From IMG/VR virus record IMGVR_UViG_3300003877_000001, positions 62,001 through 126,000 of that record: a DNA stretch of 64,000 nucleotides; one strand, 5' to 3'. The notes beneath the pieces were generated by a model. It made no database searches and was not told the origin of the DNA. It saw only the letters and a list, made by a program, of their open reading frames with translations. Position 1 is the stretch's first letter. Each line of letters opens with the position of its first letter. Below, piece after piece: positions 40,521 through 52,015 of the stretch. The translations under genes and the position numbers were made by a program.

Positions 40521-42617
40521 ATGAAAATATTAAAAGAGAAAAAAAGAGAAATTCTTGAAAAAAAAGAAATTCTAAATAATGCTAAAATAAATTTAAAAAA
40601 AGAATTTGTTGGTATTGATGATGTAATAGATGAACTATTAGATGATATTCAATCTTGGTATCTATTTCCAGAAGGTCAAATAAGACCAACTATTATTAAT
40701 TTATGGGGTTTAACTGGTGTTGGTAAAACATCACTAGTTCAAGCTATGTTTAAACATATTAATTTAGACGACATTATATATAAATTTAATGTTGGTGATT
40801 ATGCTGGTCAGGGTGATGGTTCATTATCACATGTTTTCAGTAGAGATTTAAAAGATAAAGAAAATAAACCTGTTGCTGTAATGTTTGATGAATTCCAATT
40901 AGGTAGAACTATCGATGAAAATGGTGCTGAAGTTCAAAAATCAGGATTAAGGGTTATATGGGATTTACTTGATTCTGGTAAATTGGAACACATTGATTAT
41001 AGTTGGTCTGGTGGTGAAATAATGAGATTTGTTTATAAATTAGAAAAATGTGTTAATGAAGGTGTTGAAGTTGAAAATGGTATTATTACAAAAGGATTAA
41101 ATAAATTTAAAGATATTTTTGATCTTGATGATGAAGTTGAAGAAGAAGAAATAGCCGAACCTCAAACAACAGGTAGTGGTTCTAATAAAAAAATGGTAAA
41201 AAGAAGTAGCATACCTGAAAACTTCGTTATACCATCATCATATATTTATTCAATGAAGAATTGTTTTAATGATGAATATTATTCTGAAAATTTAATATAT
41301 GAAGCATTTAAAAATTTAAATGCAAAACAAACTATCGATTTATTAGAGTTAAAATTAAAAGTAGTCTTTAAACCTAGATTATATGATTATACTAAATCTT
41401 GTATATTCATTATAGGTAATTTAGATGAAGCATATCAAATGACATCACAAGTTTCACCAGATAATAATGCAGATGATTTCCATAAACATTCATTATCAAT
41501 CGGTTTAAGTGAAATTAAAGCATCATTAAAAACCAGATTTAGAGTTGAACAAATAGGTAGATTGGGAAATAATCATATTATTTACAAAGCATTTAGTTCT
41601 CAAACATATAGAGATTTAATTAATCTAGAATTAAATAGAGTAAAAAATGATATAATGGAAAGATTTGAAATTGATGTTAATTTCGATGATTCTATTAATG
41701 ACATCCTATATAAAGAAGGTGTATTTCCAACATTAGGAACAAGACCAGTATTTACAACAATCAATTCAATGATTGAATCAACAATGAGTAAAATTACATT
41801 GGATATTGCTATTTCTAGTAAAGATGTGGATCAAATAAATTGGTCTTTTGAATATGATGAAGATGCTTATCATATTATTGATTTTGTTCATAAAAATAAA
41901 ACCATATTAAATAAAAAATATGATGTTAAACTAAAATTAGAAAATAGAAGAAAATCTGATGGTAGTGAGATTCAATTATTAAATGCTGTACATGAAAGTG
42001 GACATGCAGTAACGTGTATGTTAATAATGGGTATCATTCCACAAGTTATTGTAAGTAAAACAAGTGAAAGTGATAATGCATTTACTAATTCAAAACAACC
42101 TAGTATGCATTTAAAAACTTGGTATGAAAATGATATTATTGTATCATTAAGTGGGATGATTGCTGAAAAAATGATTTTTGGTGAAGATTTCCAATCTAGT
42201 GGTTCTGAAAGTGATTTAGTAAGAGCAACTAATAATGCATTAATTGCAGCACAAAGATATGGTATGTTATCTGAAAATAGTGCATTTGGTATTCCTAATG
42301 CACCAACACAATATAATGAATTTAAAGATACTCAAGCAACAGATATTGAGGCAAAAACTTGGGTTAATGAATGTTATAAAGAAGCCGAAAAGTGTTTAAA
42401 TGAAAATAAAATATTATTAATAGAATTATCAAAATATCTATCCCAAAATTCTCAAATGAAAAAGGAACAAATAATTGAAGTTTTAGATAGATTAAATTAT
42501 AATGTTGATAATAAAGACTTAGAAAAATATTATAATTTACACGATAAATTTAATCATTTTGAAACTAAATATGAACTTGTAAGACCAAAAAGTCCTGCTC
42601 CAAGCATAATGGAATGA
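40521..42617 (+). CDS. AAA+ ATPase fused to M41 (FtsH-like) Zn peptidase
   Basis: GLTGVGKT, FDEFQ, AVHESGHA, L.G..AE...FG....G...DL..A. Confidence 0.85.
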   Translation: MKILKEKKREILEKKEILNNAKINLKKEFVGIDDVIDELLDDIQSWYLFPEGQIRPTIINLWGLTGVGKTSLVQAMFKHINLDDIIYKFNVGDYAGQGDGSLSHVFSRDLKDKENKPVAVMFDEFQLGRTIDENGAEVQKSGLRVIWDLLDSGKLEHIDYSWSGGEIMRFVYKLEKCVNEGVEVENGIITKGLNKFKDIFDLDDEVEEEEIAEPQTTGSGSNKKMVKRSSIPENFVIPSSYIYSMKNCFNDEYYSENLIYEAFKNLNAKQTIDLLELKLKVVFKPRLYDYTKSCIFIIGNLDEAYQMTSQVSPDNNADDFHKHSLSIGLSEIKASLKTRFRVEQIGRLGNNHIIYKAFSSQTYRDLINLELNRVKNDIMERFEIDVNFDDSINDILYKEGVFPTLGTRPVFTTINSMIESTMSKITLDIAISSKDVDQINWSFEYDEDAYHIIDFVHKNKTILNKKYDVKLKLENRRKSDGSEIQLLNAVHESGHAVTCMLIMGIIPQVIVSKTSESDNAFTNSKQPSMHLKTWYENDIIVSLSGMIAEKMIFGEDFQSSGSESDLVRATNNALIAAQRYGMLSENSAFGIPNAPTQYNEFKDTQATDIEAKTWVNECYKEAEKCLNENKILLIELSKYLSQNSQMKKEQIIEVLDRLNYNVDNKDLEKYYNLHDKFNHFETKYELVRPKSPAPSIME

Positions 42618-42804: not shown

Positions 42805-43083
42805 TTATTTTTTGTTATTGATGATTCTTTTAGTACCTCTTGAATTTTTATTTTTTCCACAATGTGTATCTAATGTTGCATTACAATTTGGACATGCAAT
42901 TCTTAGGTTTTTAATCCTATTATCATTATTCGTTCCATTAATATGATCAAGAATTAGACTCATTTTTTTTCCTCTCCATTCTTCACCTTGTCCACATAAT
43001 TCACATTCACGTTTTTTTAAACCTTCTTTATATAATCTTTCTTTTAAATTGGAAGTGTGTCTATATTCTGAATTTTCAATCAA
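42805..43083 (-). CDS. HNH endonuclease, probably 5'-truncated
   Basis: CELCG, LDHING..NDNR..NLR..CPNC. Confidence 0.75.
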   Translation of the reverse strand: MIENSEYRHTSNLKERLYKEGLKKRECELCGQGEEWRGKKMSLILDHINGTNNDNRIKNLRIACPNCNATLDTHCGKNKNSRGTKRIINNKK

Positions 43084-43093
43084 TATTTATTTG

Positions 43094-43164
43094 CACCCAT
43101 AATAGGTTACGCTCCTATGGCTCAACATTCAAAGTGTTGCGAGTTACTATTACCCCATATGGGA
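43094..43164 (-). tRNA. tRNA-Gln(UUG), atypical T loop
   Basis: CAACA-CTTTGAA-TGTTG anticodon arm; T arm ATAGG-AGCGTAA-CCTAT. Confidence 0.75.
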
Positions 43165-43172
43165 ATATTTTG

Positions 43173-43245
43173 GGTGTTCGACCAGAATCGAACAGGCATT
43201 ACTTGAATCACAATCAAGCGTGTTTACCGTTATACTACGAACACC
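43173..43245 (-). tRNA. tRNA-His(GUG)
   Basis: CTTGA-TTGTGAT-TCAAG; G-1:C73 pair. Confidence 0.9.
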
Positions 43246-43250
43246 ATTTG

Positions 43251-43323
43251 CTGACCTATCTGGAATCGAACCAGAATCTCCAAATTCAAAATTTGGCGTA
43301 ATAAACCGTTATACAATAAGTCA
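43251..43323 (-). tRNA. tRNA-Gln(UUG)
   Basis: CCAAA-TTTTGAA-TTTGG; GGTTCGATTCC. Confidence 0.92.
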
Positions 43324-43328
43324 ATATG

Positions 43329-43401
43329 GGTGTTTAATGGAAATCGAATCCATACCTTCGGGGTCACGACCCGACAATGCTACCGTTACAACATAAACAC
43401 C
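43329..43401 (-). tRNA. tRNA-His(GUG), C33 variant
   Basis: TCGGG-TCGTGAC-CCCGA; G-1:C73 pair. Confidence 0.85.
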
Positions 43402-43406
43402 ATGTG

Positions 43407-43463
43407 ATAACTTTTCATATATGAAACAAAAACAATCAATATGTTTCATATATGAAAAGTTAT
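43407..43463. repeat. perfect 22-bp inverted repeat between tRNAs
   Basis: ATAACTTTTCATATATGAAACA ... TGTTTCATATATGAAAAGTTAT. Confidence 0.9.
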
Positions 43464-43466
43464 AAG

Positions 43467-43542
43467 TCGGGTAAGAGGGAATCGAACCCCCATGATGTCT
43501 TCGTCCCAAACGAAGCGACTTACCTGATTAGTCCATTACCCG
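43467..43542 (-). tRNA. tRNA-Pro(UGG)
   Basis: CTTCG-TTTGGGA-CGAAG; C1-G72, A73. Confidence 0.92.
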
Positions 43543-43568
43543 ATATTAATAAATCAAAGAACAATAAG

Positions 43569-43644
43569 TCTAAGTGACAGGAGTTGAACCTGTAAATAAT
43601 CTCGATTCCAAGTCGAGCAACCACACCTCATGGATCGCACCTAG
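43569..43644 (-). tRNA. tRNA-Pro(UGG)
   Basis: CTCGA-CTTGGAA-TCGAG; C1-G72, A73. Confidence 0.85.
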
Positions 43645-43689
43645 ATATTTAATATTAAAATTTGTAACGTTTTACAAAAGTATGAACAT

Positions 43690-43724
43690 AAAAAAACCCT
43701 GTTCATTTTGATGTGAACAGGGTT
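43690..43724 (-). terminator. intrinsic terminator of attenuator 1
   Basis: AACCCTGTTCA-CATCAAAA-TGAACAGGGTT-TTTTT on minus strand. Confidence 0.9.
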
Positions 43725-43749
43725 CTATTAATTATTATAATTACAATAG

Positions 43750-43833
43750 TTAACTAGACATATTCTCCCCGTTCAACATCTGATGTTGATGCTGCGGTTG
43801 GGGTTGACCTACTATGTTAACTAATCTTTTCAT
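43750..43833 (-). CDS. leader peptide MKRLVNIVGQPQPQHQHQMLNGENMSS
   Basis: 27 codons with CAA CCC CAA CCG CAG CAT CAA CAT CAG run, upstream of terminator and Pro/His/Gln tRNAs. Confidence 0.88.
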   Translation of the reverse strand: MKRLVNIVGQPQPQHQHQMLNGENMSS

Positions 43834-44088
43834 TGTTCTATTTTTTAATTCAACGCAATTATAATACATATAATTTAAATAAACAAGTCATTTTGCAAAA
43901 AACTTTTACCTACCCTCAGTTATTACACTAGGGAGAAGCTATTTTCTTTTCTTTTTTAAAGACTTAACTTAAACGTTTAAGCGATAACTTCGCTTTCTTG
44001 CTAATAAATACGTAGTACTTTAGGTTTTGGTTACAAAAATTTAAAATTTATTTTTATTAAACTATAATGTATTTATAATAAAGATTTT

Positions 44089-47089: not shown

Positions 47090-47209
47090 ATGAAGAATTC
47101 AAGAACAATTTTAAACACCAATATGGAAGCCATGTTATGGTCAGTTGCGGAAGCAGTTGAGGTGGACGATTTGTGTCTAGGGTCTTCAGGAGAAGGTGAA
47201 TTAGTTTAA
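47090..47209 (+). CDS. leader peptide MKNSRTILNTNMEAMLWSVAEAVEVDDLCLGSSGEGELV
   Basis: 39 codons; M/E/A/L/W/S/V/D control segment; terminator follows. Confidence 0.82.
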   Translation: MKNSRTILNTNMEAMLWSVAEAVEVDDLCLGSSGEGELV

Positions 47210-47234
47210 CTACTAAAACATCCAAACGAAATTG

Positions 47235-47264
47235 AAGACCCAATCCTAACAGATTGGGTTTTTT
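47235..47264 (+). terminator. intrinsic terminator of attenuator 2
   Basis: AAGACCCAATC-CTAACA-GATTGGGTTTT-TT. Confidence 0.9.
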
Positions 47265-47286
47265 GTTTTATAAGGGTTTAGAAATT

Positions 47287-48663: not shown

Positions 48664-48727
48664 TCCTTACCTTTGGTTTGGATTCTACAAAGGTTTTCAA
48701 CGTTGAACCCGTTAATCAACGTTGTTT
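48664..48727 (+). repeat. double-hairpin spacer element, copy 1
   Basis: TACCTT..GGT.TGGATT...AAAGGTTTTCAACGTTGAACC...TCAACGTTGTTT. Confidence 0.85.
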
Positions 48728-48806: not shown

Positions 48807-48940
48807 TATGAATTGTTAGTGGTGGAACAGGTATACACTATCACCGTTGAAGGTGGTTTGTAGGGGTTATAGAAAACCCCTGCTGCATGGTAACATGTGG
48901 GACATCCCTTGTAGGTTCGAGTCCTACCTAGTGGTTCATA
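48807..48940 (+). ncRNA. enlarged tRNA-like RNA (Ser/Leu-type D arm, two extra hairpins)
   Basis: 13-bp terminal stem, GTGGAACAGGTATACAC, GTAGG-TTCGAGT-CCTAC. Confidence 0.75.
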
Positions 48941-49023: not shown

Positions 49024-49088
49024 TCTTTACCTTATGGTCTGGATTTAAAAAAGGTTTTCAACGTTGAACCAGATATCAACGTTGTTTT
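49024..49088 (+). repeat. double-hairpin spacer element, copy 2
   Basis: Near-identical to 48664-48727. Confidence 0.85.
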
Positions 49089-49092
49089 ATAT

Positions 49093-50264: not shown

Positions 50265-50336
50265 GGAGCATTGGTCTAACGGCTAGGATATATGACTATC
50301 ACTCATAGGGTAGGGGTTCGATTCCCCTATGTTCCG
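50265..50336 (+). tRNA. tRNA-Asp(AUC)
   Basis: TATGA-CTATCAC-TCATA; GGAGCAT/ATGTTCC stem, G73. Confidence 0.88.
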
Positions 50337-50346
50337 CACTGGTCAT

Positions 50347-50465
50347 TAAAGTATGGTGTAATGTGCACGATACTTCCATGTACCGACCAACGATAGCCTA
50401 TTAGTATGGTGACAATAGGTTGGCAACAGAAGTAAAGGATTAAGGTTAAATTCCTTATTACTTGA
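50347..50465 (+). ncRNA. tRNA-like RNA with extended anticodon arm
   Basis: D arm TGGTGTAATGTGCAC, TACTTC/GAAGTA enclosing about 50 nt, T arm TAAGG-TTAAATT-CCTTA. Confidence 0.55.
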
Positions 50466-50481
50466 AGACCTAAAAAAATAT

Positions 50482-50621
50482 GCTGTAATGGAATGAAGTG
50501 AAAACGATAAAGTATAATGCATTGAAATATCGTGGAAACTATTAGTCACTAGCGATAATTGGCATTAATCATTTAACATAGGGGTAATTTCCTATTATGG
50601 GTTCGAGTCCCCAATATGGCA
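50482..50621 (+). ncRNA. enlarged tRNA-like RNA
   Basis: GCTGTA/TATGGC ends; GGG-TTCGAGT-CCC T arm. Confidence 0.55.
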
Positions 50622-50706
50622 CAAAATTATGGTATGATGGAATTGGTATACATGTGGGTGTGACCTTCGAAAGAATAGGTGCAGATCAAACGGATATGTT
50701 AACAAA

Positions 50707-50808
50707 TGAAGTAAAAGGGTTAAATGATGATTTAAATGTCTTGGCTTAAAATAGTTTCAATATTTAAATATGTAGTTTATCGTTAAGGTTCAATTCCTTA
50801 TACTTCAC
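50707..50808 (+). ncRNA. enlarged tRNA-like RNA
   Basis: TGAAGTA/TACTTCA ends; TAAGG-TTCAATT-CCTTA; ATTTAAAT long arm. Confidence 0.6.
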
Positions 50809-50909
50809 AAAAGTCTGGCAGAAGTATGCGATAGGTACGACAATACCGATAGCAGAAAATGAAGGACACATTGAACTCGAAGCATTGTCGTGTGGAGATA
50901 GTAAATGTT

Positions 50910-51209: not shown

Positions 51210-51364
51210 TAACTAATGGCAGAGTGGCTTAATGCGGATGTCTAGTTCTATATGATTGATAGAGGGTGAACTTCTTTATCTTTTGCTCATGAACGGAAAC
51301 AATTACCCTGATTACGAGAAGCAAATATCGAAAGGGGTCATAGGTTCGAATCCTATTTAGTTAG
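51210..51364 (+). ncRNA. enlarged tRNA-like RNA with insertion in the anticodon loop
   Basis: TAACTAA/TTAGTTA; TGGCAGAGTGGCTTAATGC; GATGT/ATATC; ATAGG-TTCGAAT-CCTAT. Confidence 0.78.
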
Positions 51365-51397
51365 CAATATTATATCAAACGGATATAATGAAAATAT

Positions 51398-51616
51398 GAG
51401 GATGTGGTGGAAAGGTAAACACGCTTGTTTTAGAATAAGTACAAAGTTCATTTGGGAATAAATAATACTGATGAAGAGATGAATACCATAATGCTTACTG
51501 CTTAGTTGAACCAAGTTACCCTTCGGGATATGTCGGTAAAATAGAAATCGAAATCTAAATGATAGTAGAGGTAAGAGAGAAAGTCTGGTTTGAGGGTTCG
51601 AGTCCTTCCATCTTCA
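51398..51616 (+). ncRNA. 219-nt tRNA-Leu(UAG)-like RNA with giant variable region
   Basis: GAGGATG/CATCTTC+A; TGGTGGAAAGGTAAACAC; CTTG-TTTTAGAA-TAAG; GAGGG-TTCGAGT-CCTTC. Confidence 0.78.
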
Positions 51617-51655
51617 CTAAATTATATCAAACGGATATAATAAAAATTGAAATAT

Positions 51656-52009
51656 GGGGGTAACAGGAATTGACAGGATACGATAGGTAGACGGTGCAAG
51701 TATGAGGAAATTGCTCTACTCATTAAAAATAGGTAATGAACGTTTAAGTGGCGAAGCACTTGCAATGGCAGCATAACCGAAAGGTTTTTGTACCATTCGA
51801 GATACCACCAACTAGGTAGGTGTTCTCATAGATACTGATCACGTAAAGAGATCAAAAAATGTTGTGGAACATAAAACCAAAAAGTCTAATGTAATAAAGT
51901 GTTTGTAAATAAAAAACATAATGACTTAAAAATAATAAACAAACTAAACTTGTGAATGACTTTTTATTTGTAATATAACTGGACAGGAGTTCAAGTCTCC
52001 TTACTTCCA
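51656..52009 (+). ncRNA. ssrA: tmRNA, tag (A)GEALAMAA
   Basis: GGGGGTA..GGAATTGAC 5' end; tag ORF 51750-51776; TAAACTTGTGAA; GGAC-AGGAG-TTCAAGT-CTCCT-TACTTCC-A with G3.U70. Confidence 0.95.
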
Positions 52010-52015
52010 CAATAT

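Follow-up and report, generated by a model that had tools for sequence, protein, structure and literature searches.

The locus lies on the minus strand of a 64,000-nt stretch of DNA (hereafter the window), which is identical to part of a 326-kb IMG/VR viral contig (IMGVR_UViG_3300003877_000001, positions 62,001 to 126,000) and comes from a huge phage. The window has about 26% GC and carries more than 20 tRNA genes and a tmRNA-like gene. Within it, a short open reading frame encoding the peptide MKRLVNIVGQPQPQHQHQMLNGENMSS is followed by a strong intrinsic terminator, a conserved 22-nt box, and an array of six tRNA genes for Pro, His, and Gln (Table 1). The ORF contains nine consecutive codons, CAA CCC CAA CCG CAG CAT CAA CAT CAG, for the same three amino acids. 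The original prediction, which described a leader peptide before these tRNAs together with three alternative RNA pairings, placed the elements correctly.

Table 1. Features of the Pro/His/Gln tRNA locus and of the second leader, in window coordinates (minus-strand features are given in the direction of transcription).
Feature	Position	Strand	Remarks
Promoter-like motif TGTAACC-N17-GTATTTA	44035-44005	-	Likely transcript start, inferred
Weak sigma-70-like pair TTGTTT-17-TATAAT	43886-43858	-	Alternative, nearer promoter
Leader ORF	43833-43750	-	27 codons plus TAA; ATG 43833-43831, TAA 43752-43750
Run of nine Gln/Pro/His codons	43806-43780	-
Region 1 (CCCC...CAGCATC)	43803-43788	-	Pairs with region 2
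Region 2 (GATGTTGAACGGGG)	43780-43767	-	Pairs with region 1 or region 3
Intrinsic terminator (3:4)	43726-43690	-	13-pair stem to 43693, 8-nt loop, T7 tract
Region 3	43724-43710	-	5' arm of the terminator plus first loop bases
Conserved box TACTTTTGTAAAACGTTACAAA	43682-43661	-	Role unknown
Part of the box, TACTTTTG	43682-43675	-	Contains TAnnTTTG
tRNA-Pro(UGG)	43644-43568	-	ARAGORN
tRNA-Pro(UGG)	43542-43466	-	ARAGORN
tRNA-His(GUG)	43400-43328	-	ARAGORN
tRNA-Gln(UUG)	43323-43250	-	ARAGORN
tRNA-His(GUG)	43244-43172	-	ARAGORN
tRNA-Gln(UUG)	43164-43093	-	Rfam, 44.5 bits; ARAGORN at a lower threshold
Second leader	47090-47209	+
Terminator of the second leader	47234-47263
tRNA-Ser(UGA)	48812-48937		Found when long insertions were allowed

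Codon content of the leader

Pro, His, and Gln together make up 7.4% of the codons of this phage, and nine in a row has a probability of about 7e-11 per position, or about 9e-6 over all six frames of the window. The run is the longest of its kind in any frame of the window, and it lies about 135 nt upstream of the only Pro/His/Gln tRNA array. All 9 amino acids and 8 of 9 codons under strict wobble (all but CCC) can be decoded by the downstream tRNAs, but 0 of 9 by the other arrays. The run also includes rare codons. CCC and CCG occur at 1.3 and 0.7 per 1000 codons compared to 15.4 for CCA and 11.5 for CCT, and CAG at 1.6 compared to 25.5 for CAA. Both Pro codons of the run belong to the 7% rarest Pro codons, and two of the five Gln codons are CAG, which makes up 6% of Gln codons. 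The original prediction noted this rarity correctly, but its suggestion that several host isoacceptors are sampled remains conjecture, as these C/G-rich codons also build the 1:2 helix and no host is known.

Alternative RNA structures

The terminator lies 25 nt after the stop codon and 45 nt before the first tRNA gene, and was the top hit of a terminator scan that found 13 sites compared to 4.8 expected in the region. Folding with RNAfold recovered the 1:2, 2:3, and 3:4 pairings of the original prediction. The full leader folds into 1:2 plus 3:4 at -46.5 kcal/mol (z = -6.7), with energies of -13.9 kcal/mol for the 1:2 duplex and -17.6 kcal/mol for the terminator hairpin. When the 3' arm of the terminator is left off, region 2 pairs with region 3 instead. 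The 2:3 duplex has an energy of -18.1 to -18.9 kcal/mol, compared to -8.7 +/- 2.1 in 1000 dinucleotide shuffles of the upstream leader, none of which was as good.

We next masked a 30-nt ribosome footprint (assumed to span -15 to +14) on the transcript as it exists before region 4 is made. The antiterminator 2:3 was the minimum free energy structure for A-site codons 7-16 and was strongest at codons 10-15, where region 3 was about 90% sequestered. Sequestration was 0.83-0.86 at codons 7-9 and 0.70 at codon 16, and from codon 17 to the stop it was about 50%, the level without a ribosome; region 2 is then covered or re-pairs with region 1. Stalls on the last two codons of the run (17-18) would mask region 2 and favour termination. 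Without a ribosome, 1:2 forms. At equilibrium on the full transcript the terminator wins for every ribosome position, so the switch must be kinetic, as in known attenuators. The 110-nt conserved stretch upstream of the leader is not significantly structured (z = -1.4).

Conservation in related phages

The neighbouring FtsH-like peptidase gene led to two close relatives, L003 (neighbouring gene 88% identical) and L004 (65%), and a degenerate codon scan of IMG/VR gave a more distant genome, L205, a separate 58-kb contig. All three carry leaders with QPQPQHQP (MKTLVNIVRQPQPQHQPMLNG... in L003, MKKIVNIVRQPQPQHQPMLNG... in L004, and MKRIINIQPQPQHQPIFG in L205) and a terminator between the leader and the tRNAs, and the ATG, frame, and stop are conserved in the four genomes. 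The downstream arrays are built on the same three identities. Pro, His, Gln, and His tRNAs plus two unidentified tRNA-like stretches were detected in L003, Pro, Pro, Gln, His, Gln, and Gln in L004, and Pro, Pro, a His(GUG)-like gene recognised only by eye, and Gln in L205. A further relative, L091, also has an array of Pro, His, and Gln tRNAs throughout, while the contigs of P0005 and P0007 end before the leader.

Within the run, 5 of 6 substitutions are synonymous third-position changes and the sixth is Gln to Pro, while 7 of 8 substitutions outside the run change the amino acid (Fisher p = 0.026). Selection therefore acts on the identity of the codons in this frame, not on the peptide. The region 2 core TGAA(C/T)GGG is kept in all four homologues, and 2:3 complementarity also beats all of 1000 shuffles in L004. 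The 1:2 pairing is kept as CAACAT(C)/(G)ATGTTG in L003 and L004, but takes a different form in L205. MAFFT placed the L205 terminator arm out of register, and pair changes were read directly from the sequences. The terminator stem shows one compensatory change, a T-A pair in the window and L003 being replaced by C-G in L004 and L205, and the region 2 partner of that position is G, which pairs with either base. The three closest genomes are too similar (85% mean column identity across the aligned region) for strong covariation, and no double compensatory change was seen in the 2:3 helix itself.

Exact and degenerate DNA patterns from the box and the leader N-termini re-found only known contigs in IMG/VR, tblastn of the leader peptides against GenBank phages found nothing, and a metagenome scan with an alignment of close relatives returned only distant relatives.

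Additional leader families

Two further leader families in the same phage group show the same correspondence between codons and tRNAs, and in a cross-comparison each leader matches its own array and not the others. The second leader of the window, with Met, Glu, Ala, Leu, Trp, Ser, Val, Asp, and Gly codons, has its own terminator and antiterminator (10 of 1000 shuffles as good). From Met12 to Val39, 27 of its 28 codons match the downstream array Ala, Glu, Leu, Ser, Val, Trp, Asp, Met, Asp, Leu, Gly (P about 3e-8). Its TCA codon implied a tRNA-Ser(UGA) that had been missed by the first tRNA scan, and this gene was found afterwards. L205 has a homologous leader before Asp, Val, Glu, Leu, Ala, and Trp tRNAs.

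A third family, with runs such as RWSSRWSSR, precedes Ser(UGA), Ser(GCU), Ser(GGA), Arg(UCU), Arg(CCU), and Trp tRNAs in L007, L009, L092, and L096. These are again the longest such runs in the loci tested, L007 and L009, although the antiterminators of this family are only marginally better than shuffles (p 0.03-0.2). The first tRNA-like gene begins about 10-20 nt after the T tract, which leaves no room for a separate promoter.

Not every tRNA array in these phages has a leader. The array Ile / tRNA(CUA) / Lys in L007 and L092 has none. Small ORFs of the MMPIRFF type before arrays in L015, L033, and L052 are an out-of-frame reading of the end of what reads as a dihydrofolate-reductase-like gene, and those arrays have canonical Bacteroidota promoters. 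In L192, a leader-like ORF with a terminator matches its array only suggestively, the antiterminator is weak, and canonical promoters follow the terminator; this case was not counted.

Host and transcription signals

The host phylum is probably Bacteroidota. Only 1 of 44 long ORFs has a Shine-Dalgarno core, the cellular homologues of the neighbouring gene are nearly all on contigs assigned to Bacteroidota, and the more distant relatives L015, L033, L052, and L192 use canonical TTTG-N19/20-TATCTTTG promoters. The leader ORF likewise has no Shine-Dalgarno sequence and an A-rich upstream region like the other genes of the phage. In the window a different motif, TGTAACC-N16/17-GTATTTAT, precedes many genes. 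GTATTTA(T) lies 20-45 nt before many ORFs, several times with TGTAACC 16-17 nt upstream, and the motif is found before the Pro/His/Gln leader, where it is conserved in L003 and L004, at 47043 before the second leader, and directly before the homologous leaders in L205. The nearer sigma-70-like pair is kept with 17-nt spacing in L003 and L004, but by the criteria of a promoter scan its -35 hexamer matches at only 3 of 6 positions, and its relevance is doubtful in a probable Bacteroidota host.

The box after the terminator is unique in the window and identical in L003 and L004. It may be a promoter, an operator (it is palindromic), or a processing site.

A predicted ribosome-mediated attenuator

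The best explanation, which we consider probable although all evidence is computational, is a ribosome-mediated transcription attenuator that controls read-through into the phage's own tRNA array. The promoter, translation of the ORF, coupling of transcription and translation in the unknown host, and the response to tRNA supply are inferred. In this model, a ribosome translates the leader close behind the polymerase. If charged tRNAs for the Gln, Pro, and His codons are plentiful, it runs through the run and covers region 2, or lets region 1 re-pair with it once it has passed, so that region 3 pairs with region 4 and transcription stops at the T tract. If one of these tRNAs is scarce, the ribosome stalls on codons 10-15, region 1 is covered, and region 2 pairs with region 3 as soon as the latter emerges. 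The terminator cannot form, the polymerase continues into the six tRNA genes, and the new tRNAs relieve the stall, closing a negative feedback loop. With no translation at all, 1:2 and 3:4 form and transcription terminates.

Alternatively, the leader and terminator could be a real translation-dependent switch that reads something other than the supply of these tRNAs, such as general translational activity or the stage of infection, or that acts through Rho, RNA processing, or transcript stability. Since the structure defaults to termination without a ribosome, any loss of translation also shuts the array off, C/G-rich codons are needed to build helices in a 26% GC genome and could bias codon choice, and the 2:3 helices of the sister families are weak. 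However, the other two frames of the same bases do not give Gln, Pro, and His, substitutions fall on third positions and stay within the set, and codon identity tracks tRNA identity in three unrelated leader families, which a general sensor would not need. We regard this alternative as unlikely.

It is about as unlikely that the ORF and its terminator are a separate gene or an insulator, with the array transcribed constitutively from a promoter in the TACTTTTG box, a promoter already considered in the original prediction. The box matches the Bacteroidota -7 consensus TAnnTTTG and lies about 30 nt before the first tRNA, a normal distance. A promoter here cannot be excluded from sequence, and a basal promoter could coexist with the attenuator. 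However, no -33 TTTG lies 18-21 nt upstream, TAnnTTTG is not enriched in the window (99 found, 125 expected), and neither are full Bacteroidota promoters (5 found, 4.4 expected). The box is absent from the homologous attenuator in L205, where a small ORF lies between the terminator and the tRNAs, and in the Ser/Arg/Trp family there is no space for a promoter. Nor does this alternative explain why the ORF is made of exactly the codons that the array decodes, or why two other leader families obey the same rule.

An untranslated, T-box-like element that binds tRNA directly is very unlikely: although the run could in principle present several specifier triplets to anticodons, there is no T-box sequence, an Rfam scan of 40000-64000 at E up to 1 gave tRNA and tmRNA matches and only weak chance hits to other families (best E = 0.024), the ATG, frame, and stop are conserved, and the region upstream of the ATG looks like that of the phage's other genes.

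A broader reading, which we hold to be only slightly more likely than not, is that a clade of huge Bacteroidota-type phages runs a set of codon-resolved tRNA regulators, each array being preceded by a leader peptide written in the codons that it decodes. The phage would thereby measure decoding capacity codon by codon, and transcribe a given group of tRNA genes only when those codons become slow. This would be the first attenuator class whose output is the tRNA that resolves the stall, and it could be a response to decay of host tRNA or to tRNA-cleaving defences. Why phages carry tRNA genes is a long-standing question, with codon-usage compensation, replacement of a decaying host tRNA pool, and escape from tRNA-targeting defences as proposals. 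If the attenuators work as predicted, the phage itself reports the condition under which its tRNAs are needed. They would also extend leader-peptide attenuation to tRNA genes, giving the shortest possible feedback loop, to phages, and to hosts that do not use Shine-Dalgarno sequences, and the modular design could serve as a natural template for codon-specific sensors of translational capacity.

Comparison with known systems

The tRNA clusters of large phages (T4, T5, vibriophage KVP40, huge phages) are likewise polycistronic arrays interspersed with homing endonuclease genes, but we know of no described cluster preceded by a codon-matched leader peptide and attenuator, and full-text searches that did not cover subscription journals found none. 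The leader-peptide attenuators of the enterobacterial his and trp operons (one amino acid) and thr and ilvGMEDA operons (several amino acids) share with the predicted element a short ORF with a run of regulatory codons, mutually exclusive 1:2, 2:3, and 3:4 helices, an intrinsic terminator, and a fold decided by the position of the ribosome. Sensing of several amino acids is as in thr and ilv, and the use of rare codons as in the leu leader. Here, however, the regulated genes would be tRNA genes rather than biosynthetic enzymes, so the product would act directly on the stalled ribosome instead of through amino-acid synthesis and charging, and the element belongs to a phage, has no Shine-Dalgarno sequence, and probably works in a Bacteroidota host.

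The closest functional relatives are the pheST attenuator and T-boxes, which raise the supply of a sensed aminoacyl-tRNA. In the pheST attenuator (pheM leader peptide) and other attenuators before aminoacyl-tRNA synthetase genes (comparative survey cited as reference 7 in PMC4833913), the target is the charging enzyme for one amino acid, while here it would be a set of tRNA genes for three amino acids, with the leader's codons mirroring the array. T-box riboswitches follow the logic proposed here, in that a shortage of a specific charged tRNA induces read-through of a terminator before a gene of tRNA metabolism, but they bind uncharged tRNA directly, use a single specifier codon, and need no translation. 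Finally, polycysteine short ORFs acting as cysteine-responsive attenuators in mycobacteria (bioRxiv 10.1101/834739) tune expression of downstream genes through ribosome speed on consecutive codons for one amino acid, but those are leaderless ORFs before protein-coding operons, with no tRNA genes and no matched multi-amino-acid design.

Additional leader units associated with tRNA arrays

A second attenuator-like unit is present in the window, with the leader MKNSRTILNTNMEAMLWSVAEAVEVDDLCLGSSGEGELV, a terminator, and an antiterminator in which GGGTCTTCA pairs with TGAAGACCC. It precedes the array Ala, Glu, Leu, Ser, Val, Trp, Asp, Met, Asp, Leu, Gly, and 27 of the last 28 codons of the leader match that array. 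The homologous leader in L205, a separate contig from a more distant relative, has an in-frame TAG where the window has ATG, and the frame continues as LNGNVMC beyond it. The relatives L005-L008 and L092 carry tRNA(CUA), and TAG may therefore be read through in some of these phages. A third leader family, rich in Ser, Arg and Trp codons and with a terminator, was found before Ser/Arg/Trp tRNA arrays in four relatives (L007, L009, L092, and L096), where a divergent tRNA-Ser(UGA)-like gene not recognised by Rfam starts about 10-20 nt after the terminator. In another phage, L192, a small ORF, MQTLNILLTIAGTEGRDTTWKQMV, plus a terminator precedes a Glu, Asp, Arg, Met, Gly, Leu, Thr, Gln array, but canonical Bacteroidota promoters follow the terminator, so this case is doubtful.

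Positions of additional features in the window and in related contigs
Sequence	Position (strand)	Feature
Window	47090-47268 (+)	Second attenuator-like unit
L007	14119-14270	Ser/Arg/Trp leader family
L009	13191-13337	Ser/Arg/Trp leader family
L092	13232-13375	Ser/Arg/Trp leader family
L096	13266-13410	Ser/Arg/Trp leader family
L205	3780-3782	In-frame TAG in homologous leader
L192	849-980 (+)	Small ORF plus terminator (doubtful case)
Window	43405-43470 (-)	Inverted repeat between second tRNA-Pro and first tRNA-His
Window	42805-43083 (-)	HNH endonuclease gene
Window	48684-48726 and 49050-49090 (+)	Repeated hairpin box
Window	50265-50337 (+)	tRNA-Asp with anticodon ATC
Window	51210-51365, 51398-51617, 50340-50900 (+)	tRNA-like genes with long insertions and unclassified tRNA-like stretches
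Window	51656-52012 (+)	tmRNA-like gene
L205	12660-13028	tmRNA
Window	44035-44005 (-), 47043, 49735, 50226, 63099 (+), 15487 (-) and others	Recurrent promoter-like motif
Window	43890-44000 (-)	Conserved stretch between promoter-like motif and leader
Window	40521-42617 (+)	FtsH-like M41 peptidase gene

Features of the tRNA arrays

The inverted repeat in the first array has arms of about 21 bp, as read from the sequence. The sister contig (L001/L081) has a deletion here that removes the 5' part of the first tRNA-His, and in the close relative L003 a homing-endonuclease-like ORF sits at this position. The HNH endonuclease gene lies directly after the tRNA array, and endonuclease-like ORFs also interrupt the arrays in L003, in the relatives L004 and L091, and in L205.

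In the second array, the repeated hairpin box (AAAGGTTTTCAACGTTGAACC ... ATCAACGTTGTTT) is located directly before tRNA-Leu(CAA) and tRNA-Trp. The second copy scores as terminator-like, and these boxes may be internal terminators or processing sites. The tRNA-Asp with the unusual anticodon ATC is next to a normal tRNA-Asp(GTC), and the second leader contains both GAC and GAT. This array also contains tRNA-like genes with insertions of 76 and 135 nt, together with further unclassified tRNA-like stretches. The tmRNA-like gene in the window scores 43 bits, just under the Rfam gathering score of 47, and in L205 a tmRNA with a tag peptide was identified by ARAGORN.

Promoter-like sequences and host affiliation

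A recurrent promoter-like motif, TGTAACC-N16/17-(AC)GTATTTAT, precedes genes, leaders and one tRNA. GTATTTAT is shared with L205 and L192, and TGTAACC with L205, and the motif may represent the phage's own promoter class. The stretch of about 110 nt between this motif and the first leader is highly conserved in L003 and L004, contains a small hairpin (AAGCGA/TCGCTT), and ends in a T run. It is not significantly structured, and could be a long 5' UTR or a small RNA. The cellular homologues of the FtsH-like M41 peptidase (34-38% identity) lie almost all on contigs assigned to Bacteroidota, which hints at the host phylum.
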